Assembly: GCA_965112735.1 (NCBI GenBank)
Contig: OZ218964.1
Span: 434,001-498,000 of the forward strand
Direction: 5' to 3'
DNA: 64,000 nt
From: Phaeosaccion multiseriatum
Lineage: Eukaryota; Protista; Ochrophyta, other classes
Below, piece by piece: positions 174 through 35,700 of this stretch. Position 1 is the first letter of the stretch. The number at the start of each line of letters is the position of its first letter. Both the position numbers and the translations under genes were made by a program. The notes under the pieces were generated by a model. It was not told the origin of the DNA. It searched no databases and saw only the letters and a list, made by a program, of their open reading frames with translations.

Positions 174-434
174 GGGGAGGGTCGGTGAGGGGAGGCGAAG
201 AAGTGCGCTTAGAAGCGGAAGGGGGGCGACGCTACTCTGTGCTCTGTGCTCTGTGCTCTGTGCTCTGTGCTCTGTGCTCGACACTCACCGTGATGACCCG
301 GACCTTCTGCTCGAAGAATTGGGGCACGCCCGGCAACACAAACACATTCTCGCACTGGAGAATGGGCCACTCCGCCTTGCCCTTGCCCGGAGACGGGAGA
401 CGCAGCACAGCCCGCTCGGGCAGGAGAGCCATCT

Positions 435-467
<33 letters not shown>

Positions 468-870
468 TGGTGGTACAGCAAGCATCAAGCAGCAGCAGGA
501 CGGGGACACGCGCTTAGGAAAAGAGGACTTTTACAGTTACAGCTGACGGGGAAAAAAACAAGACAGCCACTGACCTTGAGCTGCGCCTCCGTGAGCCCCT
601 TTTGGTCCTGCACCTTGAATGCCGTCACGAGCTTGCCGAGCATCTCCTCACTCTGTGTGATGGGCTGCCCCAGCGCCGCCCCCACGGCCTTGATGGTGAT
701 GTCGTCGTGAGTGGGGCCGATGCCCCCCGAGGTCAGCACGATGTCGTAGGCCTGCGCCTGCTTGCGCACCTCAGCGGTTATGTCCTCGAGGGTGTCACAC
801 ACCACAGTTACTCTCTGAGAGGGGAGGGGAGAGGGGCACCATGAGGGAGCATTGCCACAAATTGGAGGGC

Positions 871-904
<34 letters not shown>

Positions 905-3362
905 GGAGGAGGAGGAGGAGGAGGGGACGGGAGATGGGGGAACTCAGGGCAGCACGGGGGACGCTGGAGGGGGCGCTGGTAGTCTCTTGGTGCGGTAGGC
1001 GGGAAGGGGGCGGGCATAAAGGGGAGCGGTGGAGGCTTTTGGCTGGTCCCGGCACGAATAGCAAGAGAAATTCACAACCACGCGGATAACAAAGACATGA
1101 CCGATACCCGATACACCTGATAGTGTATGGTCCTACATGCACCTACCTGTATGGGGATGCCTCGCTTCCAGAAGGCCTCCGCCGCGAATTTGGTGTTTGA
1201 GTCGACGCACTTTCCCTTGAGAATCTCGTCCCCGACTATCACCAGCCCCACAGACTTGCAGCTCAACCGCCCGGGCCCTCCTGCGCATACAGACCCCAAG
1301 TTATCGCCGCAAGCAAGCGTCAAGGGACTCCACAAGAACGGATGAATGACGAGCTATCGTACTTGAGCAGAGGCAATACAGCAGCCTCCATGACTCTCCG
1401 TCCTGCCCTGCACGCCCCCAAGACCCACCTTCCCGCTTCTCCTCCTCCTCCTCCTCCTCTTGAGCAGGAGCCACAGCTTCAGCCTCGTCGTTCTTCTCGC
1501 CCTTCTTGAGCCGCCCAGCTCGCTCCAAGTCCCAATCCACAAGCATATGGGCTGGGTAGTATCCAGACCCGCCCGGCCGCTTGAGAGCTGCCGCAAATGA
1601 AGCGTGCCATAAGCACAAGCGAGTAGTACGTCCAATCCAAATAGGGGAGTGTGAACGAGGTGATGGAAGGCAGGGGAAGGCTGGTTTGGTCACGGGCCCC
1701 TTCTGTCACTCACTCCACTTACCTGGATTGGGTTGGGTGTCCTCCACAGAGCCCAGCGACGTGTAACCCTCGTCGTACAGCGAAGGGTACGGGAGCTTGA
1801 ACTTTCTCAGAAAGGTCCAAATCTGTCCGTAGTCCCAGTCGATGATGGGGTTGACGCGCATGAAAGGCGGCATCCAGTCGCTGCTCGGCGTAAAGGGCCC
1901 CTGCGTGCCGCAGTTGGGGTCCCCCTTCCTCGTCCCCAGGGTGAAGGCGAAGGTCCCGCCGCCCAGGTCGGACATGCATTGGGTCAGGCCCTGATTGGGG
2001 GTGATTGGGAGGGGGGACGTGCGTGTGTGTGCGGGCGTGCATGTGCGTGCGAGTGTGCGTGCGAAGTAGTATAGTACTCAGTAGTGCTCAACAATGCAGG
2101 CCTTGCGGAGCAAAGGAGGGTGGGCGGTGTTCACCGACCACTGACACGGACCTTGACAAATCCTGTGTCGTAGGTGAGGACGTCGAGGTCGTAGTCCGTC
2201 TTGGAAGCTTTCACCAAAGCCTTTATCTCCGGGAAGTCCTGAGTAGAGGAGAGTGAAAGGGGAGGGCGGATCAGAGACAAGAGAATACAACGCTCCACGC
2301 CGAGAGCGCACGTACAAGGGGAAAAGAAGCAAGCAAACAACGCGAACAAACCAAAAGCGTATCACTCACACCCACCTTGGGGTTCTCGAAGTAGATGACC
2401 CTGGCCCTGTGCATCCTACCCCTGTCCAGGCTGTACTTGGCGACGGCTGCCCGCTGTAGATGCATAATCACCACGGCGTCCTTTCCCCCATTGTAAGACC
2501 CCACAAGCTTCTCGGGCCCGTACAGCCGCAGCGCGTCCGCCAGCCTCTGGAGCGCCTCTGCCACGCGCAGCGCCAGTTCTGCTGAGCCCTCCGAGAGGCA
2601 GCCTATCCCATCCTTCTCTCCCTCCTCCCCTCCCCGCACCCCTTGGACGGCGTCTTGTCCGCAGCCGGACGCGATGAAGTCCTGAAAAGTGTAGTACAAG
2701 GCGAGGCTTTGCGAGAAGGCTTCTTCGTCGACGCCGTCTGGGTTGTCCAGCTCGGCCACCACCCGCATCAGCTCCGGGGTGACATCGCCCGGTGCAGCAC
2801 TTCCCACTGTGCTGCTGCATCTGGGGCCGCTATGTCCCAGTCTACGGGAGTTTGCTTTCTGCTCCTCACCCGCCACGAGGAGATTCCGTGCTTGCGGGTG
2901 GAGCGAGAGAGAGGATAGGGTCGGGTCGGCCCCTACACACCGTCGAAGACGCATGACCGACGAGTGGGGTCGCACGAGAGAGAGAGAGAGAGATAAGGAT
3001 TGGGAACCGCGTGTAGATTACAGAGCAACGTGGTGAAGGACAGGTAGGCCTTCGTGCACCTCATTCCTTTACCGTAAAATGGGGGGGAGACCTTCTTCCT
3101 ACCGAGCACGCCTGCTGCTCTATCACTCACCCGGCAGTAGCCAACAGCGGCTACTGTCCGCCCTCCTTCTCTTCTTCCTGGCTCCTGCCAGCGCAGCCCC
3201 CTCTCCATCCCACGCACCACCGCGCCCTCGCAGCCCTACTGCTGCTCCTTGAATGGCGTGAGCTGTGCTGGCGGTGCGGGGCACAAAAGCCTCTACACCC
3301 TGACCCTGCAACGAGAGGAGAAGCGTCAAAGTCAGGCCTGTCGCACGCGGCCAAGCAGCCAT
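1..3362 (-). CDS. FLAD1: Bifunctional FAD synthetase: PAPS-reductase-fold FADS domain followed by a molybdopterin-binding/CinA-like domain, with a bipartite plastid-type presequence; 3' end lies outside the window
   Basis: Phase-consistent GT-AG exons 3362-3131, 2890-2376, 2238-2152, 1990-1723, 1587-1429, 1280-1147, 814-575, 432-289, 124-3 (next donor at 2-1). FADS motifs: SYNGGKDAVV, LGTRKGDP, FMRVNPIIDWDYGQIWTFL, YPSLYDEGYTSLGS, ERAGR. Molybdopterin-binding motifs: VIVGDEILKGKCVDSN, TSGGIGPTHDDIT, VFVLPGVPQFF. Confidence 0.93.
235..278. repeat. (CTCTGTG)n 7-mer tandem repeat, intronic
   Basis: About 6 copies just inside the donor at 288. Confidence 0.9.
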
Positions 3363-3710
3363 GGTGGAGACCTTGTGAGGTGCAAAATGGTAAATGAAAA
3401 ATGAAATATGATTGACCCACATGATCCACACATGTTGGTGGCATTTCAAGCCAACTGTGAGTTTTTGACCTCACACACACACACACCACACACACACACA
3501 CACATTCACACTTTCAAGTGATTCCTAAGTCAATTTCAACACCTTTTTGCTTTGAAAGACGGTCCTTAGTGACGGCGAAGGAGCCAACATTGTACCCCGA
3601 GGGTAGGTGGAATGTAATTGGGGCATACATGTCGCGGAAAGGGGGTTTTGCCCACGAAAGAGAGCCCTGAAAATCGAAGATGACGTCGTAAGATTACATA
3701 ATAAATACAG

Positions 3711-5135
3711 CTATGGCGCCTCCGCAGCAGCCTCTTCCCCCTTGGCCTCCCTCACGACCTCCTTATCGAACGCCCACGCCACCTCGGCGGCAACGTCGGC
3801 GTCGATGCTCTGCGGGGCCGCGACCATGATCTTCTTGTTGACCATCAGGTACTTTATCACCTCCCCCACCTGGGCATATGGGCAACAAACAGCATGCACG
3901 AAGGGGAAAACACATTAGTGTGTGTGAGAGAGCGAGGGAGCGGGCGGGGAGGGAGAGAGGGAGAGAGAGAGGGAGTGAGCGAGTGAAAGTGAGCGAGGGA
4001 GTGGGGGAGTGGGTATGTGAGAGAAACACGGAGTGAGAGCGTGGGTGAGCGAGAGGCAGAGGGAGTGGGGGTGAGGGAGAGACAGAGAGACATATCAAGA
4101 GGACACATGTACTAAGGGAGGAGGAGGAGGAGGAGGAGGAGGAGGAAGAAGAGGAGGAAGAGGAAGGGGGAGAGGAGAAGGAAGTGGAGCAGGACGAGGA
4201 GGGGGTATATAGGGGAGGAGACGGAGAGGGAAGAGAGGAAGAACGACGACGACGACGACGACAACAACGACGACGACGAGGAGGAGGAGGAGATGATGTA
4301 CACATCCAGCTTCCTTTTCAGCGAGACACAATAGCAAGCCCTGTGCTTGGTGCAGCACCTTCGCGCTGCCCGCGCGCACCCCAGCAAACTCGACCCACAG
4401 ACGGAGACGGCATCTCCTCCTCCTCACCTTGATGTCCATCATGGTGGCGAGCTCAAACACGGTGACAGTTGGCTCGAGCAGAGACACAGGCTTCGCGGGG
4501 GGGGGCGGTTCCACCTTCTTTGGAGGGGGGGGGGGGCGTTTTTGGCCCCCTCGAGGCTTTTTCTTCCGCCGTTTTGGCCTGTGGGGGGAGGGGTGCCCGG
4601 GGGACGTGTGCGTGCGTATGAGTGCGTGCGTGCGTGCGTGTCAGTTAGTTTGATGGATAGACTGAGTGCGGTTTGAATGAAGTGCGCGTGTTGTTCGTGT
4701 GACCTCCCTCCAGCCCCTCCTCCCCCCCTCCTCCCTCTCCTCGTCCTCCTCGCACCCCTCCTCCTCCTGCCCCCTTCGTCTCCTCCACCACCTGACCCAC
4801 CCGGTTTTCTTGGCGGGCGGGGGTGTGGCATAGCCTGCGTCATTGTCGCTGAACACGTCTGAGGGTGTGTTGTCTGTTTCGGGGGGGTTGTAGGCATTTT
4901 TGGTGGCGAGGAGAGTCCGTGCTTCCCGGTGAAGCGGGAGGGAGCACGGCGCCGTGCTACTGCCGAGCGGTCGTCGCCCCATTGGCTCGGCGCCTTGCAG
5001 CCCTGCCGCTGAGACTGCTCCTTGAATGGCGTGGGCTGCGCTGGCGTGGCAGGGCACAAAGGCCTCTACGCCCTGGCCCTGCCGCCAAAGGAGCAGAGCC
5101 AAAGTCAAGCCTACTGCTCGAGGCCCCGCAGTCAT
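3711..5135 (-). CDS. 214-aa protein with signal peptide plus transit-like region, a Lys/Pro-rich linker and a single IF2_N (translation initiation factor 2 N-terminal)-like domain
   Basis: Exons 5135-4801, 4578-4428, 3869-3711 (645 nt, in frame, TAG stop). The C-terminus VTVFELATMMDIKVGEVIKYLMVNKKIMVAAPQSIDADVAAEVAWAFD fits the IF2_N pattern. No GTPase domain precedes the stop. Confidence 0.8.
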
Positions 5136-5545: not shown

Positions 5546-8500
5546 ATGAAGTGCAAGACGATAATGTTCAGGATTGTGCAGGCGACCAGGGCGGTGCTCA
5601 ATGTGTGGGACACATTCACTGACCTTGCGGTGAAGGTCCTGTTCCTCGTGGTGAGTGTCGGCAAAGTACGGGTTTTCACCCGACGGCGCTATGGATCCTG
5701 GGTCCCTGCAGCTCCGCCGGTTCCGTGGCGACAGCGGCGTAGTGGATGTCTGTGGTGTCGGCCGCCATGTAGATGGCGGTGTATCGTCGGTCAAGGCGGT
5801 TTCATCTCTGTCTCTGGCGTGCTTGCCTCACACTGACTCCATCCCCCTTCGCAACGCGTTCATTCTTTCTCCGCCGCTAAACCCAACCTAACTTCCCTAA
5901 TTTCCGTCACATCTAAAAATTGCCGTCCGTCCATGCAGGTGGCAATTTCGATGAGGAGGCTGACGGAGGAGTACCATAACTACAGGTAGGGTGGAGGCGC
6001 AGTTTCTTCCCGCCCCCCTTCTTCTCCTTTCTTCTTCCTGCAATCTCACAACTCAACTCCATTCCCCCCCATCACGCCAGTGGGTGCGAGGCATGTTGCC
6101 TGTGCCCCCTTGCTGGCTTTGGGCTGGATGCCTGCACCGGGAAGGAGACTCTGGAGGGAGAGTGCAGCCGCTGGGTGGACTGCGAAGGGCTCATCAACTT
6201 TGACAGGGCCCGGCCTCAGATTGTGGGCACCATCTACAATCCGCTGGACACGACCGAGGAGAGCTGCGACCTCAACAAAGTGGCCTCTACGGTGTTCCTC
6301 GATGAGGGCGCGTCCGACGAGCTCATCAGGGAGTGCAAGGACGGCACTTTCCTCACCTACGGGCTCATAGCAGGTAAGAGACGGAAAGAGGGGAGGAAGA
6401 CGGGGGGGGGAACCAGGGTTGCCTCCTTCTCTTTTGGGGATGTAGTTCGCGACATGGCTCACGCACACACTCTTCCTTCACTTGTTCTCTGAGCAGGCGC
6501 CACTGCTATTCTGCTGGCCTCCATCGTTCTGCCGGTGGTGAGGCACATGCTGCACAAGAAGGAAAAGAAACACCCCGACTACGTAAGTGATTGGCTGTCC
6601 TCTCCTCTCTACGCCTCGACTTGCCGCGTTGACATTGCTGACGTTCTCACTCGGCCCATATGCCTTTGTCCCCTACCCTGCACCCCCCCCTCTCCTCAGT
6701 CCGAAAGGTGGTACACGCAGGCCACGGCAGTCAACATCTTCAGCGGAGCCTGGTGGCTCATGACACTGCTTTACATCACCATCTCCAAGGTAAGGAGACA
6801 GAAAGTGGGACAGGGGAGGCTTTCCTGGGGCTGTCGGTCTGGCCTTGGGGGTGAAGTAGCTCTTTTCGTCTGACCTTGTCTTCCCTCCCTTCCTTCCTTC
6901 GTTCCTCCCTTCCCTCCCTCGCTCCCTCGCTTCCTTCCTTCCTTCCTTCCTTCCTTCCTTCCTTCCTTCCTTCCTTCTTTCCTCCCCTCCCTCCCTCCGT
7001 TCGTTCGTTCGTTCCTTCCGCCTCTGCTGTCCAGATGATGCTGGAGTCCATCCGCACGACGGACGAGGGCAATGAAGACTCTGTGTGCCCCGCCTTTGGA
7101 GACACGGAGTTCACCCTCATGACTGCGCTGTGGGTGTTGGTGGTGCTCTTTGTCTTCTGCGGGGGGGGCTGCTGCTACTCGATGATGCTAAGGCTGGGAA
7201 AGCCTTACAGCGACAGCTATAGCGAGAGCAGCACCAGGAGCTTTGGCAGGGGAAGCAGCAGCAGGGGCAGCAGCAGGGGCTGTATGTCCTTGGGCAAGGG
7301 GCTCCTCTTCTTGCTCTTCGCCATCGCCGGCGTGGTCATGTTCTTTGCCATCCTTGCCGTCAACGCTGCCCTCTTCTTCGTGCTGAGCAACGACATCGAT
7401 ATCTCCTGGATTACACTCGATGTGCAGCGCATCGGCAAGCTGCTCGTTAGCCTCAACGTGGCCCTGCTGCTTAATCAGCTCACGGCCAAGCTGCCCAAGA
7501 TCATTCTCGGCGTCTATGTGGTGGCTGTGACGTACCTGCCCATCTGCAAAGACGAACCCGCCGGGCAGGCGGAGGGGTCCGCGCTCTCTTCCCCTCGCCA
7601 ATCCCTCTCTGCCAAGAGGGGAGGAGGGGGAGGAGGAGGAGGAGGAGGAGGAGGAGGAGGAGGCAGCTCGGTGGGGCTTATCAAGAAGAGTCCCGAGAGG
7701 GGCTCAAGCAGGCCAATGTCTCCCGTCACAGCCCCGCCCCAGATGGAGGCGGCGGGTGGCAGCAAGGCCAGGCCCCAGTCCTTGAGAGCCTCAGCTCCCG
7801 CGCCCTTGGGCATGGGCGGGCGGGGGCCCGCTCCAGCGGCGGTTGCTGCTGTCGCGGCTGCTGCTCTTGCAAAACCATCTGCTGCCCCGCTTCGCACAGC
7901 GGAAGTGCCGAGCCGCAGAGCCCCTGCTGGACCTGCCGCTGTTGCCGCTGTCGTTGCTGCCCCCCAACCCCAAGGTACGGCAAGATACTCTTTGGCTCCT
8001 GCAGGCTCCTCCAGGCTCTTCCAGATTCTCTTCTGCGAGAGGCCCTGGGGGCAGGCCTGCCTGGAGGCACCGGCACGGTGTATGTGGACACTGTCCTTTG
8101 TCCTTTGTCCTGGGTCTTGCGTTGGAACACATTGTTCACTCTCTCTACTCTTTCCCTGTTTTCGCGCCCCCCTTCCTGCAACCCCTCCTCGACAGGCGAG
8201 AGGCAGCACAAGAAGAAGTCCACTGCCAACCCCGTGCATAGGCAGCCCCCGCCGGCACGAGACGCCCGACAACGTGCCGCCCCTTCCCCTGTCGTGACCC
8301 CGTCGCACCAGCGTGGGCCCGGTGTATCACCCTCTGCCACACCAGATAGAGAAGGAAGGGAAAAAAAGGCGATGCTGAGGCCACAACCTTTCGCTGTCGA
8401 CGCCCCCAGGAGGAGAGGAGACGGAGAAGGGAAGAAGGTCTCACCAGTCCTTCCTAAGGCGGCATCACGCGAGATGGATATTCTCCCCCCTCCTGCTCCT

Positions 8501-9685: not shown

Positions 9686-10235
9686 GGGAGGGAGGTGCTA
9701 AACTTAGGGCGAGCTTTGCGTCTACATAATGAGTCTTGAGTTTTGCTTGCATGTTTAAGGAGGGGGGATTTAACTTAACGTGAGTATTATGTTCAATCGA
9801 ATCCATTCTTCCTCGTGTCAGGAGCTGTAGCTGTTGATGGGTGGGGTGAAGGCGGGACAAGCAGCAAGCGACAAGGAGCAAGAAGACGGACTGGGGGGGG
9901 GGGCTTGCTCCTCGTCTACGAGAGGCGGGGACGAGAGGCGGAGGAGCTGTGTCTGCGTGTCTTGAACTAAGCGCAAGAAAAGGAAGAGAAGGCGTTTACA
10001 CACTTACACAAAGAGAGGATGCACACGTACGTACAAGCAGAGTATACACAGCCCGGATCGGATCGCCACTTCATTCCCGTTACATGCTTTTTCCTGACCT
10101 CTCATCCGTTCCGTCATCTGTGACCTTGATCAGTTGCTGACTGACTGTGTTCCTCCTTCACAGCAGCGGCTGCGGCTCAAGGGAGTTTGAGTTTCAGACT
10201 CATCTGAAGTGAACTGTAGCTGACATCTCACTTAC

Positions 10236-13200
10236 TTACTTGCTTACAGCATCTTCCTCGGCCTTGGGCGGCGCCCCCTCCACCCTCCACACCAGCACCG
10301 TCCGATCACCCCTGCCCACAGTGATGCAATACTTATCGTCGCATGTGAAGCGCGCCTTGCTCACACTGCCCACGTGGCAGTGGGGAGACACTTTGCTCTG
10401 AGGCTTGCCGGGCAGGGCCGGGTACCGGAACAGGCGGACACTGCCGGTGTTGTCCGCTGCTACCACGATGCTCTCGTCGTGGGAACGGTGCACTGTTGTA
10501 TTGTGTTGTGTTGTGCACAAAGGAGAGAGGGGAGAGGGGGTAAGAGGAGAGAAGAGGGTGACGAAAGCCTATGCAAGAGGGGGCGGCAAAAAGTGTGTGT
10601 GTGCGTGTGCGTGCGTGTGCGTGCGTGTGCGTGCGTGTGCATATGTGTGTGTGCGTGAACGTATCCTGCCCTCACCCACCTGCGGTGACCTCTCGGTCCT
10701 CTTCGCGCACCACTGCCCCAGCCCTGCCCCCCTGCTGCTTGTTGTACACCGTCAGATTGGCATGCACCCCCTGCACGGGCCATCCGAAGGGACACGTCCA
10801 AGACGCCCACTTTAGGTGCTTGAGCTGAGCGGCCACATTAAAGGCCGTCCCGTCGGTGCTGTTGTGGTGGTGGTGGCTGAAGCCCAGGCAGTCGCTCTGG
10901 ATGGTGTTGCTGTCGGTACTAAAGTCCATGGCGATGACTTCGTTGCTGTGTTGCTGGCACTTTGACCTGTTTGAGCAGGGGCACAAGAGAGACACACACC
11001 ATGGGGTGGATGCAGCGGCCCAGCGCGAAGGCGTAAGAGCAGGGGCACTCGACGACCCCACTGCACCCTAGTCCACCGCTCCTGACCGCCCTCGCCCTTC
11101 ATCACGCACGGCCACACTGCCCTTCATGCTGTCATCCCACTCACCTCAGGGCATACCCATTGGCGTCGTAGAGATAAATCTTGTGGTCGGCGGAGGCGAG
11201 GGCGAAGGTCGTGCCGTCCGGCGTGAACTTGACCTCGCGGATGTAGCTCCGGCTATCTCGGCCTGGAGGTGCAAGAGAGTCAAGGGTGCGACAGAGCCGA
11301 GTAAGAGTGAAGTTCAAGTTCAAGTTCAAGTTCCAAGTTCAAGTTCCAAGTTCAAGTTCAAGTTCAAGTTCAAGTTCAAGTTCAAGTTTTAGGTTCAGTT
11401 TCCCGCCGCCTGCGCCTGCCTGTCCTCCCTCCCTCCCTCCCTCACTGACTCACCTTCGTAGGCAACCTTCAAGGTCTCTGCAGACATGACGAGGAACGCG
11501 CCGTCCTTGCGACTTTTCTCTCCCGTCAGAGACCCGCCCAGGCCCACCACGATGTGCTGCCCCGAGGGGGACCACGCCACGGAGCGGCAACACCCGTCCA
11601 CAAGAGCTTTCCTGAGAAGGTGAGAAGCAGCAGGGCAGAGAGGGGGTTGGGGGGTGAGAGGGCAAGTGATGAGAGGAAGAGGAGAGGAGAGGAGAGGGGA
11701 GGGGATGGACTACGCCAGACTCACTCACTTGATCATTCTCCGCATGCCCACGCTCCACACGCGGACAGTCTTGTCATCCCCGGCGGTGACGAAGAGGTCG
11801 GGGTCGGTGGGGTGTGTGTCCATGCCCCACACCTGCCCTTCGAAATGCCCCTCCTGCAGCAGCAGCATGGAGCCGCTCTGCCGAGAGATCTCGTACGTCT
11901 CGCTGCCCTTGGTCCCCTGAGAGAGAAAGAGGAGGAGGAGGAGGAGGAGGAGGAGGAGGAGGAGGAGGAGGAGGAGGAGGAGGAGGAGGAGGAGGAGGAG
12001 GAGGAGGAGGAGGAGGAGGAGGAGGAGGAGGAGGAGGAGGAGGAGGAGGAGGAGGAGGAGGAGGAGGAGGAGGAGGAGGAGGAGGAGGAGGAGGAGGAGG
12101 AGGAGGAGGAGGAGGAGGAGGAGGAGGAGGAGGAGGAGGAGGAGGAGGAGGAGGAGGAGGAGGAGGAGGAGGAGGAGGAGGAGGAGGAGGAGGAGGAGGA
12201 GGAGGAGGAGGAGGAGGAGGAGGAGGAGGAGGAGGAGGAGGAGGAGGAGGAGGAGGAGGAGGAGGAGGAGGAGGAGAGAGGGAGGGACGGAAAAAGGGCG
12301 GGGGAGAGAGAAAGAGAAAGAGAGAGAGAAAGAGAAAGAGAGAGCAAGAGGGAACGACAGAATGAGAGAGAGAGAGAGCGGCACAGCTAAAGATGGAGGG
12401 TGCCAGTCAGGCCTTCTGTACAGAGAGGAGGAGGGACCGGCATTAGGAAGGAGGGCACACGTGCACACGCAGCCACGACAGGCATGCATCAGCAAACAAG
12501 TCACACACGTATTCACACACTCACTCACACGGTACGCACGCACTCACTCACTGTAACGCACGCACACACGCCCTTCCTCACTTACCACGAGCAGTTTGAC
12601 CACAGTGGAGCCCGTCTCGTCGAGGCAGGCGCTGACGCTCCTCACGGCCTTGTTGAGGGGGGGCACTGCAGCCTCCGCCATGTCGTACGTGTGGAGATGC
12701 TCTAGAAGAGAGCTCCACAGCTTGACGCACCCGTCCTTGCCACCAGACACAAGCCCTCCCGCGCAGTAGAAGAGCGAGTTGATGCAGCGGTGATGGGCTC
12801 TGACGATCTTTTCGAGCCAGCGGCCCTTCCAAATGTAGAGGTGCCCCGACACAGAGCCCGTTACGAACTTCTTCTTTGAGTGCACGGCCTGGGGGGGGGG
12901 GGGGGTGGGGGCAGGAGGGAGGTAGGAGGGGGGAAGGGGGGGGGTGATGGAGGGAGAGCGGGCGGGAGGGCAAGCGGGCGGACAAGAGCGAGGGAAGGGA
13001 GGAGGGAGGGAAGGAGGGAGGGAGGGAGGGAGGGAGGGAGGGAGGGAGGGAGGGAGGGAGGGAGGGAGGGAGGGAGGGAGGGAGGGAGGGAGGGAGAGAG
13101 GAAGGAAGGGAGGGAAGAGGGGGGAGAGCAGCGGAAGGTGAGGGTGAGGGAGCGAGGGAGGGAGGGAGGACGGAGTGTGCTTTCTCACCGTGCCGCAGAG

Positions 13201-16200
13201 CATGGTCTGCCTCGCGCCGATTTTGCCGAACACCCCGAGCTGCGCCGTGAGGGAGGCACCCGTCAGAGTCCACATCTTCACGTGGTTAGTACCGCCAGAC
13301 ACCAGGGCCGCGGGACTGCCGGGGGAGGTGAAGGCGGCGAAGAAGACTCTGGTGTGGTTGTCCCCCTTCTTGGTGGGCACGTCCCCCTTGGCCGAGGTGA
13401 CGTACGTTCCGTCGAACCACTCACCGCTGCACGACTGCCAGATCTGCAGAGGGGGCGTGGGGGGTAGAGGAGGCGTGGGTGCGTGAGTGACTTGGGAGCG
13501 TTGGCTCACTCACTCTCTCACTCACTCACTCACTCTCTCACACTCCCTCCCTCCCTTCCTCTCTCCCTTTCTTCCCCACTCACTCACTCACTCACTCACT
13601 CACTCACTCACTCTCTCACACTCGCTCACTCGCTCACTCCCTCACTCCCTCCCTCCCTCACTCCCTCCCTCCCTCACTCACTCGCTCACTCACTCACTCA
13701 CTCCCTCACTCACTCCCTCCCTCACTCACTCGCTCACTCACTCACTCCCTCTCTCTCTCCCTCACTCACTCCCTCACTCACTCACTCACTCACTCACTCA
13801 CTTCCTCACTTCCCCACTCACCACTATGCTGCTGTCGACGTCCTTCCCCATGGAGGCAAGCCTGTGTCCGTCGCTGGAGAAGGCCAGTGAGGAGATGCCC
13901 TGTCTGTGCGCCTCACAGAGGACGACGATCTCTTGGCACGAGGAGGCGTCCCAGATACGCACACGGGGGCGGACTCCGATCTGGGGCACGCACACATACA
14001 CAACATACAAACACATACACAACATACAAACACATACACAACATACAAACACATACACAACATACAAACACATACACACAACACGCACACACAACGCACA
14101 CACACGAGGAGAGTCAGTTTGGCGGGAAAGAGCCATGCGCTGAGAGAGCGGCAGAAAGGCAACAACGCGCTAAGAAGCTCTTACGTCTCCTTCCTCCCCT
14201 CCCTCCTTCCCTCCCTCACCTCTCCCGTGGCTACAAAGCGGCCATTGGCTGCCACCGCCAGGCTGGAGATGGTCCTCCCCTCCCCCCTGTAGAAGCGCTG
14301 CTCGTCGCTTTCCTTGCTGTACACCACCCCGTAGCTGCTGCACGCATACACCACCCCACCCCCCTTGTTGTACCCCATACTTCCCCTCACCCCCCCCTCG
14401 TGTCGCACCGCCCCGTGCACATTGAGCAGGCTTAGGCCCTGATCAGGGGCACTCGGATCGTTGCCCAGAATGGCCGCATAGGACGGTTCAATGACTTGCG
14501 TGACCCAGGCCCTTGATGCCGCTGACGCCTTTTCCACCGCCGCCTTCTCCAGCTGCTCCCCTCCTCCCCCTCCCCCTCCCCCGCCCGCGGCATGAGTGGC
14601 AACAAGAGCAAGGTCGTCATCCTCCTCCACGTCGGAGTCTCTGTCCTCCTCCGCCAGCCCCGCCCCGTTCATGTTCCTGAGCTTAATGTTCTCAGACACG
14701 GCCACGTCGTCTCTCTCGTGCCTCCACTGCATCACGCAGCGGTCGGTGGCCCCTATGGAGACGAGGTGTGAGTCTCCTGCCGTCCATCTGCACCGAGCGA
14801 CGAGCCCTCCGTGTCCACGGTATGCCTTGCAGGCAGCAGCGCTGAGAGGGGATGGATGGCAGTGGACGGGAGAGGGGGGATGGCGGTGGAGGGACGGGGG
14901 GGGGGGGGTTGGACGAGGAAGAATGGACTAGTCAGGAGCGGTAAAGGAGAGCTATGCAGAGCCTCCAAGGTCCCTCCCCAAGGGAGAGATAGACTGACTG
15001 ACGGGCAGACACAGAGAGAGAGAGAGAGAAAAGAATGGAAGAGCGAAGAGGCGGGCGGGAGGGGGGGCGAGAGCAGGACCCACTTGCACAAGACCCGCTT
15101 ACTCACCTGTCGATGCACGGGTAGCGGAATAGCCGAATCCGGCCGAAGTTGTCGCCAGCTGCAATGCACTTGTTGATGTGCTCCGTGCGGATGGTGGCGT
15201 CCGCAGTGTGCACCTGAGGGAGGGGGGCAGAGGGGAGAGCGGGGGAGGGGAGTGGAGGAGAGTGTGCAATACAGGGGGTCAGGACGGGCAGGGAGGAGCG
15301 ACTCACGACTCCACAGAGCCCTGATCACCCCCTCGTATCATCAGCGGACTGATATTGACTAAAACTGACACTGACACTGAACCTAACACGGTGTGCCAGG
15401 ATGAGTCCCATTGACATAGCCTCCTCTCACTGACTCACTGACTCACTGACTCACTGACTCCCTCCCTCCCTCACCTGCGTGCCGTCGTTCTCCATGGGCC
15501 ACACCCCCTGACTGTACCAAGAGAAGACCACTGTGTGCGTGGCCCACTCCACGTTCTTGAGCCTGGAGGCAGCAGGGATGACCATTCCTGTGTCTGCCTC
15601 GAAGTAGAACAGCTCACACGCCCCGCACACACTACGCAGGTACCTGAGAGAGAGAGGGGGTGGATTGGTGGTGCTTTCCCTCACTCACTCACTTACTATC
15701 GGTGAACGAACGAACCAACTAACGAAGTCACTCAGTCACTCAGTCACTCACTCTCTCACTTAGTCACTCAGTCACTCAGTCACTTACTCACTCACACCCT
15801 CACTCACTTACTCACTCACTCACTCACTCACTCACTCCCTCCCTCCCTCACTCACTCACTCACTCGCATTCTCACTACTCGCGGACTCTCTCCCCCTGCC
15901 CCTTACCTCCCATCCTGCCTCGTCCATATGCCTATACCCTTCCCATACGCCTTTACTACACCGACATGCCCTTACCTCCCGTCCTGCGAGAAGTCCATGG
16001 CGAGTATGAAGGAGTTGTGAGTAGTGATCATGGCGCACAGCGAGTAGTTGTTGGTCACGCTGTACACGTATATCTTGTTGTCATAGCTGCCCATAGCCAG
16101 CAAGGAACCGTCTGGCGACCACTTGATGTCTGTGATGTGCTTGCTGCTGTCGCGAGCCTCGTGGATCACTGAGTGAGTACACACGTGTGAGAGGGGGTCA

Positions 16201-26757: not shown

Positions 26758-29700
26758 ATGAATCCCGTTAGCAGGCGGATGGCGGCGTGGCTGGGCAGGC
26801 ACCTGCGGAAGTTCGTGGAGGATGTCGACGAGGAGCTTCTGCAGGTCGGTAGCAGCTAGTATGGCTCTCATCCGTTGCACCAGAGAGACTTGACTTGGAC
26901 GCGTTGGGGGAGGAGGGCAACAACGTCGGAGTTAGCTTCTGAGCCGTGGCCCTTTCTGAAGGCGGGGAAGGGATGCACCTTCCTTATACTGTGTGAGCGA
27001 TGTAGGGAACCGGGACTTTACGCCACTACTCACAAATGTCCCCACCTTTTTTTTCCTCTGCTCACAACCCTCATTTCCTTGTCCTCTTTGCTTTGTCTCG
27101 CTCGACGCCGAATATATAACCAGGCGGGCATGTGGTCGGGGGACCTCTTGCTGGAGGACCTCGTCGTGCGGAGGGACGCCCTTCGCCGCACCATCCACGC
27201 GCCCGTCCTCCTCTGCCTCGGAACCATTGGCTCCATACGCATTCAGGTACTGTGCCTCCTACTCAAACGACAGTGAGCAAGAGGGGTAGTTGTGATGTCC
27301 AATCGAAGTGACCTCCACACAAGCAGCAGCAGCCCAAGAGAGAGAGGGAAGGAGGGAAGGGAGGGTCTGTCTCTTTGCCGAGCGTGCGTATTGATCTGGT
27401 CCCGCCCCACTCAACGAATGATTGAATGAATGCTTGTGCTTACAGGTGCCCTGGAAGACCTTCGCCAGCGGCCGCGTTTCCTTGTGCATCAGGGACGTAA
27501 CGCTGGTGATGGAGCCGCTCGGGTCTGACATGTACGAGGAGGAGGTGGAGGAGGCCATTCGCAGGGCCATCTTCGAGTGCAAACAGGTGAGGGAGGGAGG
27601 CACACTTTGATACCAAGCGCTCTCTGTCTGCCCATTGCATTACCATATTTGCGTGGCAGTGGCCTGTGCTCTCGGGCCTTGTTGTTGGATTGCTCTTGCC
27701 CGCCCTCAGTCCACCTCATCTCATCTGAGCCTTACCTGCGTGCCTTTGGCAACCCCTGCCCCACTGTCACTGACGCACAGGCCAAGCTCGCCAAGGCGGA
27801 GGCGCTGCTGGCGGGTGTGCGCAAGTCGGGAGGGTGGCTGGGCAGGCTGGTGTCAGGACTGGCAGGCTCGTTCATCTCACGCATCATCCGCCACCTGAGC
27901 ATCGAGGTACACAACGTGCACGTGGTTTGGCAGCAGCAGGTGAGAAGGGAGGCCGAGAGAGAGAGAGGGAGGAAGGGGATGGGCATTGGTCGGGGGCTTA
28001 CGGCTGGCGCGCGAGGCTACCATTAAGGGAGGAACCCACGTAACGGGCCCCTCCCGATCTCCCTATCCAGTGTCTTCGTCGAGCCGTTTTCGCGTCTTAC
28101 TTCCTTTTTATCGCCTGTCACCCACCACTCAGTCCCCGTACGACACAAGCGTGATGACCGCCGTTGGGCTGCATCTTGAGAGCTTCGAGGTCACACCCAT
28201 CGCTGCCGCACCCGTAGCAGAGGGAGGGGTGGATGGCAACAGAAGAAGCCAGGCCTCGGGCAGCATGGCCGGGGATGCATCGGGGCGGGCAGGGGCGGTG
28301 GCGGCGGCAGCAGCGGGAGAGGAAGTGGAGGCGACGGCAATTCGGGCTACCAAGGCGCTCAAGGTGGAAGGCCTGAGAGTGTACGCGAAGGGTAGCACAG
28401 CAGAGTGGTGGGAAGGCGAAGACTTTGCTCCCTTCCCGCCCCCGGTGAAAGAGGAGAGCACAGGGAGGGAGACGTATATACTCAATGGGCTTCATGTGGA
28501 GGGGTGGGTTCAGCTGAGGCAGATTTCTACTGGCGTGGCTGCTGTGGCCGCTGGAGGGGCAAGTGTGGTAAAGGCCACCACAGAAGCGGCAACAGCAGTG
28601 ACGAGTGTTGCAGCAGACAAGGCGGTGGAGGAAGCGGAAGAAGGCGGGGCAAGGAGGCGAGTAAGCGGATCCGATAGCAGCAGTAGGGGGCCCTCGCCAC
28701 GCCCGCCAACAGCACCGCCTGCTTCGGCCTCCACCGGAGAAGAGCAGCAGCGGCAGGCATCGTCCCCCCCGCCCCCCGCTCTGGTGGCCATCTCGCTGAG
28801 TGCCGCCCCGTGTCGCCTGTGTCTGACCACGCGCCAGTTCGGCGTGCTGTGCGACGTGGCGACGGCTCTGTCCATGGCCAAGCAAAGGTGGCGCTTCCGC
28901 GGAGAGAGGCCCATGGTCGGGCCGATGGAGGAGCCGGGGCAGTGGTGGCGGTACGCGTGTGCGTGCGTGGTGCGCGAGAGACGGACGAGGGAGGGGGGGG
29001 CGTCGCTGGGCATGTCTTGGGAGTCTGTGCTCAAGCGTGCGAAGCTGCGCAGTGGGTACATGAAGCTCTACAAGAGGCTTCTCCTCTTTGGCATGGCTGA
29101 TGACGACAAGGAGGAGCAGCAGCAGCGGCAGAAGAAGCAACAGGAGAAGGAAGGAGGAAGAGGAGCGGGGGAGGGCAATGCGGGGATGACTTTTAGTTCT
29201 GAGGAGGGAGACCAAGCTGCCCCTGGGGTGGTGCGAGGGGAGGAGCTGGAGAAGCGGGCGAACACCGTGAGGGGCAAGTCGGAGCAAAACGGTCACACCC
29301 TCTACAGCTCGGACAAGAGAAGGTGGGTGGATTGTCAACTGCGGGTATGGTGGCGATGTGCAATTGTCAGCCGCAGAGACGGTGCCGGCGCATGAACTGG
29401 AAAGGTCCGACTGCCCTTGCGAACCTCGTCTTGCTGTTGTTTCTCTTTCTCACTCTCTTGCCTCTGCCTCTCTCTGTCGCTGTCTCTTTCCCCTGCGTGT
29501 TGCCCGACACCGATAGGAGTATGGCAGTGCGGGCGTGGGAAGTGCGCGAACTGTTGGCTATGGAGGACGTGCTGTCCATTGAGGAGATCTTGCTGTACAG
29601 AGGCGTCACGCGCTCCAGGATACAGGAGAGGTCTTCTTGTGGAGCCGGCGCCGGACAAGGCTACTTGGGCAGGGCATATGGCTGGCTCACGGGGGGGCGC

Positions 29701-32700
29701 AAGGAGGAGGAGGAGGAGGAGGGGGAGGGGGAGGGGGCTGGGGGTGCGGGCGGAGGCATCAAGGGAAATGATTGGGAAGCGTGGACGGGTATCGACAAGC
29801 GAGAGTTTGATAAGGTAGCCTTGCTCATCCGCAGACACTGGGTGGAGCAAGAAGGGGGGGAGGGGGCAGATAAACAGGTGGGGGACCGAGGCGTGGATGC
29901 AACTCCGATCATTTCTCTCCACCTGCGTGTACCGGAGGTCCTCATGGAGCTGAAGGGCCCGTCTTCGATGGCGAACTATGGGTCGTCGTTTCTCTCCATG
30001 CCTCTCAGTGCTTCCTCGTCGCCGAGAGTGCAAAGACGGCAAGGGCGCTTCGACGATGAAGGCGAATTTTGCTCAGTCGGGCAGCAGCAGCAGCACCACC
30101 ACCACCACCACCACCAGCAGCAGCAGCAGCAGCAACAAGGAGAATCATCAGCCTTCTTTGCGTCCATGCCTGCGGAGGCCTCGCGCCACGAGCGGCACCT
30201 GCGTGCGGGAGGAGTGCCCGCGTACACGCAAGAGTATGTCATCTTCTCCGCGGTGGTGAGTGACATCACGTGGAGAAAGAGCAAGTTTGTGACCGGGAGG
30301 TCGGCCGGAGAGGCCTGCATCGGAGACGTTGTGGCGAGAGGCCTGGACCGACAAGAGCTCTTCTCCGTGCGGAGGAAGCGGGGACTGGAGGGAGCGTCCT
30401 CCAGTGCTGTTCGAATAAGTCTCGGCCTTGCTCCAGCGGACATGGCAGTAGAGAGTCTAGAGAGCTTCGCAGCGGCTCTCGCGGAGGATGAAGCTGGCAG
30501 CGACGGAGTACCAACTGCCGGGGAGAACTCGTCCTCGCTACTTTACCGCGCTGTGCGCAGGATGGACGTTTCTCTAGCCATACACGCGCAAGTCATGGAG
30601 GTGCACATGCGGCCCTCCTCCATCCAGGCCCTGTGCGACTTCGCCGCCTCCTCAGAGGTGCTCGTGCCCGGAAGCATAATGCTCCAAGTGCCTCGGCAGT
30701 ACGAGCGGCTCCGGCACATGGCCGCTGCTAGAAGAGCCGCGGCTACCACAGCGTCGGGCAACGCCGCTCCCGGGAGACTGGGTCGGCGCAGCATTGACGT
30801 TCGACTTGCAGGCGTGAATCTCGAAGTCGATCTGGGCTTGGCCAGCGGCAGCCTGAGCGGTGAGCTCAGCGGCGGGCCCTGCGGGGCAGGGGGGCGCGGG
30901 GAGCGCGTGAGTAGGGGCGTGGCGGTGAGAGAGGAGAAGACGGCCGACAAGCTTCGAATGTCTGACGGGCTTGCAGGCCGCCTTGGCGAGGAAGAGGGGG
31001 AGGAGGAGGAGGAGGAGGAGGAGGAGGAGGACGATGAGGGGAAGGAGGAGGTGGGGAGCGAAGCAGGTGACGCAGATGTGCGTATTGGTGGAGGAACCAG
31101 CGCCCGCGGCGCTGATGGGGTGCTGAAGTGGGGCAAGAAATCGAAAAGAGCAGAGGAGCCACTATTGCGTGCCAATGCGCAGAGTGCGTTGAGCAGCAGT
31201 ACCACGAGGCAGCCGGTGGCCATCCGACTGTCATTGGGGCCTTGTGTCATGCTTTGTTCAGGTCAGGAGGATCTGGAACGGGTGGAATGCACAGCAGCCG
31301 GGGTAGGAGGAGGAGGAGGAGGAGGAGGAGGAGGGGAATCGGCCCCCTCTCCGACATGGGCTCTTCTGGCAGACCTTGCTCCGTCCCAGTCAGCCCGAGC
31401 TCTGCTTCGCTCTCTGAAGTCCCCGGTGTGTGAGAGCGTGTATGTTCGTGTAACGCATCTGATGGTGGACGTTGTGTGTCAGGCTTCTTCTAGTGTCAGC
31501 GCTTCGTCTCCGCATGCCCAAGGCACACCCACCGAACGCGGGGGAGGCATTGGTGCTGGTGCACGCAGGTGGGAAGGCGGGCTAGGGGCGCCGGTCAGGA
31601 CCCACAGTGCGCCCAGAGGTGCGGTCTGTTCTGAAGAAGCTGCGTCGCGCCGCAGCTCCATGCCTGTTGCGGCGGCTGCGGCTGCTGCCACGCGGCGGTT
31701 ATCCGCGGACAATGGGACGGGCTTCTTTGCAGGCCGCCGAAGCAAGGGACTGATGATGGTAGGGGCAGCCTCTGACGGGAGCCTGCCGCACGATTTTATT
31801 TGCGTGCCGGTGACTCTGGGGGCTGAGGGCTGGGGAGGCGAGGTGGTGTTGACGTTGTGTACCGTCGGAGGGCACCCCTCTCTGCCCGCTGTGCGAGTCG
31901 ACGCCATGCTCGAACCCTGCAAGCTCATGGTGTGTGCGGAGCTCCTTGCCGCGGCCACGGCCGTGGATACGAACGTGCGAGGCATGCTGGGCACGCCAGA
32001 GGCTGAAGACGGGGGAGGGAGGCCAAGAAGCGGTGCTGTCAGCCCCACACATGAGCCCGAGGTGTCAGGTACCGAGCACACCGCCTTGGACGTGAAGATG
32101 CTACCGCCCCGCATCGCCCTCTTGAGCGACCTGAAGCAGCTTCGTGTTGGAGTGGCCCTGTCAGGGCTGGAGGTGCGGCTCATGGGCCGTCTGTCCGACC
32201 TGGCCATGCCGCACTTGTCGAGGCAGAAGAGGGAGAGGCGCATGCGGACGGGGGTGGGGTGGCGCAACACTCGCTCCAAGGAGTGCGTGCAGCGCCTCGC
32301 CGCCACCATTTGTGAATACGGGACGGTGGACATTCCCGGGGTGGCCTATGCCTGCGCCATCTTCCTGGATAGTCTTGAGTTCTTTGGGCACGACAGGGCA
32401 CGAGTGGAGGAGGCACTGGCGCTGCTGACTCGCGAGGTGGGACGGCTCTGTGATTTGCATGGTGGTGCTTCAGGACAGGGGGGGGGGAACTCTTCGCCAC
32501 CACCGCCGCAGGAGGAGGAGGAGGAGGAGGAGGGAGATCAGCAGCAGAGAGCGGCGAGGGGCGGGCAGGAGCCAGGGGAGGAGGATTCCTTGCCCTCTCG
32601 CAGTGCCGAGCTGCAAGATGTTGTGCTACAGGCGATTCGGCTCCTCGCACAGACCAATGGTGCGGATGGAGGAGTGGAAGGGAGGGGAAGAGGTGGGGGG

Positions 32701-35700
32701 AGAGAGGGAGCGGAGCGGACTAGGCCTGGGGGCTCATCTCCGGGGCCCGCAAACGCAAGGGGAGGCGACACCGCCGCCTCCACCTATTCATACGCGCAGT
32801 ACTGCAGCGATGTGCACGAGGAGCTGCAGCTGCACGACATTCTCGTGTTAAGGGCAAGTGCGCTGTCTGTGGCTGTGACGAAGCTGACGTATGACTTCCG
32901 CGTGGAGGGCAGCGTGGAGGAAGCCGTGCTGCAAGACGCCGACGGGATGAAGATCGCCCGTGTGTGTATTGGGAGGGAGAAGGCAAGGCAAAAGGCCCAG
33001 GCTGATGCCGTTGTAGCGGCGGCGAATGCTCTGAGCGAGGCGCAGGGTGCCGGCCAGGGTGGCGGTTCGTTGTCGTCTGCGTACTGGAGCAGGGGGGGAG
33101 ATAGGCCCCCTATCAGTGCGGTGCGTAGAGGGAGTAGTCTTCGCTCCACATCGGCCTCTTCCGTTGGATCAGGAGGAGGTGGAGGAGGAGGAGGAGGAGG
33201 AGGAGGAGGAGGAGGAGGAGGAGAAGGAGGGGGGGCGAGGGCAAGGGCGAGGCGGGAGACTCAGCAGCGCCACGACTCCGAACAGGTACAGTTACAGTGA
33301 GGGGCGTTTGGGTACACTTCACTGTCACGTCGTGAACCGAGAAAATGTCCCGCCCTCGCGCACTGCTCCTCTCCTCTCCGTCTCCCCCGACATGTTGTCC
33401 ATCCGTCCTCTTGTAAAATCTCCCTCCCGCCCACTGCTCCTCTGATTTCGTCTCCTCTCTCTCCCCTCCGGCCCCCTAACCTGTTTTCCGCCCCTCCTTT
33501 TCTCTCTCAGGCGAAGCAGACGCTGGAGCGAGCGGCGGCCAGTGCGGCTCAAAGCCGCTCCTCAGAGGCGGCTCTCTCGGTAACGGTTGTGGGTCAGGAT
33601 GCAGCGCACATCTGGGGAGTAGGAGGGAGCCCCCCTTCCACTCTTGCTCGAGCCACAGCCCTCGCTCTTGCCTCCGTACACCCTCGCCAAGGCAATTGGG
33701 GTCCACCGCCCGATCCCGCCCTGCTCAACGCTCTGAAGCGAGACCGCGAGCAGCACCTGACCTTCTCCATCGGGGACGTGCACCTGGTGAGTGAGCCCGA
33801 CAGCCTCACACACGTGGTGATGGCCTTGCATGCGCTGGGGCAGGCGGGCAAAGAGGCCCGGCTGAGGCACCAAAGGATTCGCCGGAGGTGGCAGCGGCGA
33901 TGGCAGCAGCAGGGCACCTACCGCCGCCACAGCGGCAGCGGCAGCGTCGAGGGCGACAGGGGCGGTAGCACCAGCGGCGTTGGCCTGTACAGTGACCGTC
34001 ATGCTGCGCCTGCCATGTCTTGGCAGAGCGACAGTAAGCTCAGCGCGCCGGCGCCGTTCTTCTTCCGGGCGGCTGAAGACAGAGATGGAGACAGAGATAG
34101 TCGCAACCCTCAGGAGCAGCAGCGCCAGCAGAGGCCCTTGTCGCTACGCGAACTCCTCCCCCGCTGCTCTCTGACCTCCGTGTGGACGGTGCGGGTGGAC
34201 TGCTTCACGCTCCTCATGATGTTGCGGGGGCGCATGTTGGCCCGATTGGGAGTGGCAGGCGTGGCGGGTGACGCTATGCTGCAACAAGCTTGGAAGAAGG
34301 AGACTCCTCTCGGACCTGGAGCAGGGCCGCGTGTCAGGACAGGGGAAGGGAGGAGAAGGTCGTCTTCAGGGAGGGAGGGCGGGGAGGGCCGGGAGGGCCC
34401 CCCTCCTTTCGAGCGCTCGACGACTCTTACTTCGTTGGGTCTCACAGTTGACGACTGCCAGCTGCTGGATTTGTCTCCGGATGGCATGCTGCACCACGAG
34501 GTGATTTGTCGGAAGGGGTCGAGGGGAGATGTGTTTGCGCCTCCTTCTCTGCCCAGGCCCTTGGATGAGAAGATCAGCCGATTTCCCCCCGTCCACAGCT
34601 TTGGCACCAGTCACAGTGGTGGTGGCGGCGGGGGCCGTGGCGTGCGGGGATCTGTGCAATCGCCGTTGTCCCCACCCAGGCAGTACGCAGACGGGCAGGC
34701 AGGAGGCGACAGGGGAGCAGCAGCAGCAGCAGGAGGAGGAATCCCCGCTGCTGATGCTTCTTCTTCCCGTGCTCCGGCCTTGCCCTTTCTGGGGCTCGAT
34801 CTTCGCCCGCCGCCCTCCAACAAGTGTGTGCGAAGGTGTAGCTCCACCAGTGCATGTGCGAGCGCGAGTGCCGATGCCGATGCCGGTGCCAGCATCAGCG
34901 AGCTTTCTGTGCCGTCCCGAGAGCTCAACGTTCGGCTGAGCGGCGTCCGCGTGACCTTCCTGAACCGCTTCCTGCTGGAGTTGATGGAGTATGCCGGGCG
35001 GTGGGGTATAGGGCCCGTGGTGGCACTCGTCAAGGACCCTCACAGTGCGGCAGCGGCTCCAGCGCTAGCGGCGGCGGCAAGGCGGGCGTGGCGGAGGTGC
35101 GTAAGTTTATTTTGCCTCCTCTGCCTCTCCGTCCCGCCTTCGTTGGTGCCTTGCCTGTCTGTCTGTCTTCCTGTCTTTCTGATTGTCTGTCTTTCTTGCT
35201 CGTCTATATGTCCGACCGAAAGGGCCTGCATCTACGTGACGTCCTTCTCCTGACTCCTCACCCCCCCCTCCTACCCGCGGTCGTGGCATGTTCTGTCTTC
35301 CTTCCCTCCTTCAGGTCAAGTCATGTGCCGAGTACCAAGAGGATCAGTAAGGACGACCGTGCGGGTGCTGACGACTCAGATGTGGACTCACTTGGCGACG
35401 GCGGCCACGCTCCGGACGTGAGGGATGAGGAGGCTGGGGACAAGAGCAGCAGGATGGGCGAGGGGCGGCTGAACTCGGACGAATCCTCCAGCTTTGGGGG
35501 GTGGGGAGAGGACGACGAGGAGGGCTTCTACGACGACGATCAGTCGACCGCTTATGATAGTGAAGATGAGCAGAGACTCCTCATACAAGAGGAGGAGGCT
35601 GCTGCACTGGCTGCTGCTGCTGCTGCTGCTGCTGCTGCCGCCTCCACCGCAGCTGCCACTGCTTCGGGAACTAGTGGGGCGGAAGGGGGCCTTGCGAAGA

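Follow-up and report, generated by a model that had tools for sequence, protein, structure and literature searches.

Homologous, putatively plastid-type leaders on two unrelated tandem genes of the ochrophyte Phaeosaccion multiseriatum

Two tandem genes and their predicted structure

We analysed a window of 64,000 nucleotides (nt) from the ochrophyte Phaeosaccion multiseriatum (GenBank assembly GCA_965112735.1, contig OZ218964.1, positions 434,001 to 498,000), in which two neighbouring minus-strand genes begin with homologous DNA. These genes, here called A and B, encode a predicted FAD synthetase (FADS) and a predicted protein with an IF2_N domain, and each opens with a putative leader of the kind that would direct proteins into complex plastids of red origin (Table 1). 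The original prediction for this stretch held that the two mature proteins are unrelated, that they share a duplicated plastid-targeting presequence and that one gene gained its targeting by local copying from its neighbour. Domain content bears out the first of these claims, with PAPS_reduct and MoCF_biosynth in one protein and IF2_N in the other, and beyond the leader blocks described below we found no other similarity between the two gene bodies by blastn or tblastx.

Gene A runs from 3362 down to ~232, and its predicted product is an FAD synthetase of the eukaryote type that ends in a MoCF/FAD-pyrophosphatase-like domain. PAPS_reduct (PF01507, 1.3e-15) is followed along the gene by MoCF_biosynth (PF00994, 8.9e-14), a domain order like that of plant AtFADS1, in which FAD synthetase is fused to a C-terminal FAD-pyrophosphatase-like domain (PMC9678776). 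A FADS homologue at 10001-12800 of a 16.9-kb metagenome contig (L001, 43% GC) also has PAPS_reduct followed by MoCF. The gene A ATG at 3362 has the context CCACCATGG. Among all in-frame GT..AG combinations, G|GTGAGT at 3131/3130 is the sole consensus donor, and the resulting 240-nt intron joins exon 1 in frame with the FADS open reading frame (ORF). In-frame acceptors would start the second exon at 2932, 2890, 2854 or 2806, of which 2890 has the best pyrimidine tract. Homology between gene A and its closest FADS homologue (P0001) starts at 2801, which lies 11 codons before the internal Met of gene A; translation should therefore begin further upstream than that Met.

Within predicted intron 1, an ATG at 2952-2954 opens a frame (MRLRRCVGADP..) with an Arg-rich N-terminus and no hydrophobic core. 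A transcript begun inside this intron would yield FADS without a signal peptide, and hence a possible second location of the enzyme.

Gene B (5135-3711) is predicted to encode a protein of 214 residues from an open spliced coding sequence of 645 nt, and its sole recognisable part is the IF2_N domain. Intron 2 splits this domain, which is detected, at 34.2 bits (cut-off 25.3), only in the spliced product. From a stop at 4641 down to the IF2_N exons the frame has no ATG, and the domain must therefore take its start from an exon further upstream. Predicted introns with consensus GT..AG ends allow an in-frame connection of either leader to its gene body.

Two further observations concern gene B. 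The linker encoded by exon 2 is strongly basic and proline-rich (KRRKKKPRGGQKR, then PPPPP and PPPP) and resembles a nuclear localisation signal; it is coded by C12 and C9 homopolymer runs, which are liable to length errors. A divergent plus-strand gene at 5546-6370 starts ~410 nt upstream of the gene B ATG, and the two probably have a common bidirectional promoter region.

Table 1. Leader copies, second homology blocks and predicted exons of genes A and B (window coordinates)
Feature	Position	Strand	Description
Leader copy A, block 1	3226..3362	minus	ATG 3362, signal peptide, VEA|FVP motif and first residues of the transit-peptide-like part; FADS-like precursor residues 1-45
Leader copy B, block 1	4993..5135	minus	ATG 5135, first in-frame ATG of the ORF; VEA|FVP motif; residues 1-47 of the IF2_N-domain precursor
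Block 2, gene A	2876..2913	minus	Pyrimidine tract, AAG and first 15 nt past the best in-frame acceptor (2891/2890); contiguous with the FADS catalytic-domain exon
Block 2, gene B	4907..4944	minus	Colinear with block 1; within the open exon-1 reading frame (..SLPLHREARTLLA..)
Gene A predicted exon 1	3131..3362	minus	232 nt, 77 codons + 1 nt; donor CGG|GTGAGT; from sequence only
Gene A predicted intron 1	2891..3130	minus	240 nt; in-frame stop 3125-3123; alternative in-frame ATG 2954
Gene A exon 2	2376..2890	minus	N-terminal part of the FADS (PAPS-reductase-like) domain, SYNGGKD motif; placed by tblastn with homologues
Gene A remainder	232..2375	minus	End of PAPS_reduct 1975-1706; MoCF_biosynth 1335-1072, 805-485 and probably ~432-232; exon borders approximate
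Gene B predicted exon 1	4801..5135	minus	335 nt; donor CGG|GTGGGT
Gene B exon 2	4428..4578	minus	Basic, proline-rich linker and first half of IF2_N
Gene B exon 3	3711..3869	minus	Second half of IF2_N and stop codon

The leader repeat and its conservation

The two leader copies lie on the same strand, as a direct and not an inverted repeat, with a spacing of 1773 nt. An ungapped alignment of 3362-3241 with 5135-5014 gives 97 identical nt out of 122, blastn gives E 7.7e-27, and a repeat search of the window returned the leader as a family with two members, 121 nt long and 80% identical. A degenerate 30-nt leader core, allowed up to 3 mismatches, matched 2 sites in the 64 kb, with 0 expected in shuffles. 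The encoded peptides have the ATG as their first codon in both copies and are identical at 31 of 40 residues; nucleotide and residue counts reproduce those of the original prediction, and the peptides are exactly as it gave them. The leader repeat is confirmed as real and more than chance, and homology between the two leaders is shown in the DNA itself. The promoter and 5' untranslated regions ahead of the ATGs show no similarity (best local score 16, null mean 22), in line with the onset at the start codon that was originally described.

A search for a larger tandem duplication, with IF2_N exons upstream of gene B or FADS pieces within gene B, returned microsatellite matches only. Microsatellites crowd the introns and spacers at 3900-4300, 4640-4800, 6870-7020 and 11900-12000, as (GGA)n, (GA)n, (GACGAC)n, (GCGT)n and (TTCC)n; they raise local-alignment null scores and were left out of the significance tests. 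A candidate third leader at 56095-56235 (tblastn E 4e-4) was rejected, as it has a stop and its DNA score of 22-25 lies below the null maximum of 30.

Bipartite signals of the ASAFAP type, which serve red-derived complex plastids, consist of an endoplasmic reticulum (ER) signal peptide, a cleavage motif with Phe at +1 and a transit-peptide-like part. The predicted anatomy of the leaders resembles that of such a signal, more closely in A than in B. Each copy has Arg at residue 6 and then, descriptively, a hydrophobic 11-mer (TGLTLTLLLSL in A, mean Kyte-Doolittle value 1.77; AVGLTLALLLW in B, 2.25). The cleavage motif V-E-A|F-V-P is the same in both copies, with V at -3, A at -1, F at +1 and P at +3, and the differences among its codons are synonymous only; this match, made by eye, agrees with the Phe +1 motif originally described. 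In copy A, the first 25 residues after the cleavage site comprise 3 Lys/Arg, 0 Asp/Glu and 9 Ser/Thr/Ala, which fits the transit-peptide pattern well. For both exon-1 peptides a language model picked out small plastid precursor proteins as look-alikes, every one with a score below 0.9 and hence a lead only. We infer that each leader is translated, spliced to its gene body and sends its product via the ER into a red-type complex plastid. Riboflavin synthesis is plastid-targeted in ochrophytes (PMC5462543).

As a whole, the leader pair is under purifying selection in the leader reading frame. The ratio of non-synonymous to synonymous substitution (dN/dS) between the copies is 0.27 in the ATG frame (dS 0.54, dN 0.14) and 1.6 in frame 2, and frame 1 has stops; constraint is seen in the leader frame only. 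Nine residue changes were observed, against 14.7 +/- 1.9 in simulations of two neutral copies conditioned on 24 differences and an open frame (P 0.003). The ten codons of QGQGVEAFVP have taken 3 synonymous and 0 non-synonymous changes. Conservation is lowest in the hydrophobic core, with 70% nucleotide identity over codons 1-18 versus 88% over codons 19-40.

Constraint on each copy individually is likely but not proven, because 7-9% of simulation runs that pair a neutral copy with a fully conserved one end with no more than nine residue changes (P 0.07-0.09). The earlier view that both copies are functional gains support from the frame-specific constraint and the intact QGQGVEAFVP; the one-neutral-copy model is not firmly rejected. 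The same simulations speak for a reading in which a single copy is in use and the other is a decaying relic, the likelier relic being A; translation of FADS would then start at the ATG at 2954 or at an internal Met at ~2792, and the protein would lack a signal peptide. Alternative in-frame ATGs are indeed present, the acceptor of gene A intron 1 is AAG, and the gene models are predictions from sequence. We nonetheless regard a relic as quite unlikely. In copy A the ATG stands in a perfect CCACCATGG context, the frame stays open as far as a consensus donor, and the junction is in frame. Signal peptides are present on FADS homologues, and upstream of FADS no sequence other than copy A is a candidate for one. 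The domain of gene B has no other possible start.

The frame-specific constraint also argues against the leader segment being a dispersed or regulatory DNA repeat that is open in one frame by chance. Such a repeat might go undercounted, as the copy count is limited to the 64-kb window, and simple repeats are abundant in the surrounding region. Only two copies occur in these 64 kb, however, the match at 56095-56235 being at chance level on DNA, and both begin at an ATG, in the same orientation and directly upstream of genes. A leader profile run against 1.84 billion protein representatives found four marginal, unrelated matches only (E >8e-5), and a degenerate DNA pattern for QGQGVEAFVP had no match in metagenome contigs; the protein and metagenome libraries did not contain the window's own proteins, and the source genome itself lay outside both searches. 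We judge a repeat family very improbable.

A dS of ~0.54 marks the leaders as an old, maintained pair and not as the fresh snapshot of leader origin that had been proposed. At this distance neutral flanks are no longer alignable, and the sharp onset of similarity at the ATG thus reflects selection and not the original breakpoint.

Synonymous differences between the copies (3243-3362 versus 5016-5135) are unevenly spread, affecting 10 of 25 codons in the signal peptide and 1 of 15 after the cleavage site. Numbers are small, and the spread could reflect a gene-conversion tract or nucleotide-level constraint. A conversion tract would suit a scenario in which independent leaders were homogenised by gene conversion; the tandem arrangement and common orientation fit this scenario as well as one in which the copies are alternative first exons of one gene. 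We give hardly any credence to either, since gene conversion requires pre-existing homology, and the IF2_N exons and a stop codon sit between the copies. Moreover, a splice from B exon 1 to FADS exon 2 would be out of frame and run straight into stops, so the copies are not alternative first exons of one gene.

Extent and direction of the copying

The similarity had been described as fading a few codons after the aligned segment, and it in fact continues. Past a 6-nt indel, by which block 1 of copy B exceeds that of copy A, 19 nt more align at 16/19 (A 3244-3226, B 5011-4993). A second block, colinear with the first, then aligns B 4944-4907 with A 2913-2876 at 32 of 38 nt, with a local score of 46; the best control scores were 30 for random window targets, 43 for random queries and 32 for a shuffled query, in three sets of 3000 trials each. 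In gene A, block 2 spans the predicted boundary between intron 1 and exon 2. The copied unit is thus a 5' gene fragment whose homology extends to the start of FADS exon 2, and not just the presequence named in the original prediction. Since the 3' limit of homology falls inside a coding exon, we favour partial gene duplication with in-frame fusion over intron-mediated exon shuffling. The distance between the two blocks is 258 nt longer in A than in B, exactly 86 codons.

We consider it probable that a 5' gene fragment was copied over ~1.8 kb, likely from the FADS gene, and now leads two unrelated tandem genes. In such an event, the 5' fragment of one gene would have been copied ~1.8 kb away in the same orientation, bringing with it the start codon, ER signal peptide, Phe +1 cleavage motif and transit-like start, up to the beginning of the next coding exon. 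The upstream copy would then have lost 258 nt (86 codons, in frame), so that its donor site disappeared along with the intron or the greater part of it. The result in gene B would be one continuous first exon fused to IF2_N-specific sequence.

The original prediction named no direction for the copying; FADS is moderately favoured as the donor, with the IF2_N gene as the recipient, on three grounds. FADS homologues elsewhere already carry signal peptides: all of those with N-termini (7/7) open with hydrophobic signal-peptide-like segments, and one of them (P0007) reads ..FVCEA|FSS... Gene B is without detectable relatives, as IF2_N orthologues were found neither by word-index search, with the exon-1 ORF or the spliced 74-residue domain, nor by metagenome locus search, the sensitivity of these searches being limited by length windows and an exact-word requirement; contig L001 has no IF2_N gene and is too distant for synteny comparison. 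Finally, copying from FADS asks for a single in-frame deletion of donor site and intron, a simpler event than the origin of a new in-frame intron.

Much the same grounds tell against the opposite direction. In that case the leader would be native to the IF2_N gene, and a copy of the first 229 nt of this gene would have been placed before FADS, where it took over from an earlier leader; an insertion or intronisation of 258 nt would later have arisen within the FADS copy. The leader homology itself is symmetrical, the breakpoints lie in coding sequence of both genes, and the available searches gave no outgroup locus with which to polarise the event. Yet this direction demands a new in-frame intron with a consensus GTGAGT donor where copying from FADS demands a deletion only, a FADS already equipped with a signal peptide had no need of a new leader, and the lack of detectable relatives fits gene B as the younger gene. 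We therefore think it unlikely. As to the claim that targeting was gained by local copying, the local duplication of the leader stands, while gain of targeting is not separable from replacement of an earlier leader, no IF2_N orthologue having been found.

Several points weigh against copying from FADS into gene B as we describe it. Its direction leans on parsimony and on negative searches of limited sensitivity. The acceptor of gene A intron 1 is an unusual AAG accompanied by three further in-frame acceptors, and should the true one be that at 2932, block 2 would belong to exons in both genes, and this part of gene B could no longer be argued to be former intron. The in-frame ATG at 2954 could yield FADS without the leader. 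Splicing of both genes is predicted from in-frame consensus sites, and four sequencing runs that carry 96% of the whole 6 kb, introns included, give no discrimination of exon versus intron. The number of leader copies is that of the 64-kb window, and the simulations with one neutral and one conserved copy count here too. In copy B, the first 25 residues after the cleavage site comprise 0 Lys/Arg, 1 Asp/Glu and 10 Ser/Thr/Ala, a weak fit to the transit-peptide pattern; Arg at +4 has been lost, with Cys29 in its place, and the first Arg residues follow at ~+32. Without Arg at +4 and without Lys or Arg for 25 residues, the transit-peptide part of copy B is the weaker one.

Precedents and further features of the window

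Judged by its predicted genes, the locus is a good new example of a known mechanism, presequence reuse via partial gene duplication, a principle already established in plants. In Populus and other Malpighiales, rpl32 has a transit peptide from a duplicated plastid Cu-Zn SOD gene (Ueda 2007; Cusack and Wolfe 2007; as recounted in PMC8018952). There, as here, an unrelated gene has a leader homologous to that of an existing plastid-targeted gene, acquired via a duplicated 5' part of the donor, with amino acid identity between leaders of 49-63% compared to 78% at our locus. The rpl32 case differs in that it concerns a primary plastid, a simple transit peptide and a recipient newly moved from the plastid genome, and is backed by transcripts and experiments. 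At the locus described here, the whole bipartite signal is common to both genes and the putative donor and recipient are still neighbours, and the evidence is that of sequence.

A plant mitochondrial case is similar in that a gene owes its targeting to a copy of 5' coding sequence from elsewhere: the presequence of cytochrome c1 came from GapC by exon shuffling (Long et al. 1996, as cited in PMC7456531). It involves a mitochondrial signal, and its borders lie at introns, whereas the 3' end of homology here lies inside a coding exon. Closer in organism and signal is the hypothesis of Kilian and Kroth (2004) that presequences of diatoms and secondary algae arose by exon shuffling from plastid-targeted genes (as presented in PMC3017844), which concerns ASAFAP-type bipartite leaders in comparable organisms and the same mechanism. 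As presented there, it was argued from intron positions near presequence borders and not from a DNA-homologous donor-recipient pair. In Plasmodium, PfAOP (Prx5) has an apicoplast bipartite leader on an added first exon, for which presequence reuse has been inferred (PMC5361646, PMC5354554). It is like our locus in that a separate first exon, joined to an unrelated enzyme, supplies the bipartite leader for a complex plastid of red origin; it differs in that localisation was proven by experiment, and the portions of these accounts that deal with the leader name no donor gene with a homologous one.

A limited literature search found no DNA-homologous donor-recipient leader pair for a complex-plastid alga, which is no proof of novelty. 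This locus might be the first cis donor-recipient pair for a complete bipartite complex-plastid leader, in which the 5' end of an ancestrally plastid-targeted FADS was combined with IF2_N exons into a lineage-specific plastid protein, a claim that we put forward tentatively and hold to be possible if on balance doubtful. How nuclear genes come by two-part leaders for passage across four plastid membranes is a question usually approached through intron positions or statistics. With a putative donor and recipient that are still adjacent and alignable as DNA, the mechanism becomes testable in a single locus, including its candidate parts of partial 5' gene duplication, intron loss and in-frame fusion. 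The locus also indicates which parts of a leader are held constant: the cleavage motif is conserved, as are the transit-peptide residues that come first after it, and drift affects the hydrophobic core.

Elsewhere in the window, the plus strand carries very long open frames at 29323-41974 (1325, 554, 860, 574 and 940 residues) with no Pfam match at E 1e-4. This region is the most G+C-rich part of the window and has positive GC skew, and it may be one giant gene without known domains. An ORF on the minus strand at 12544-13509 has a sub-threshold match to an EML-type beta-propeller (59 bits, cut-off 88).

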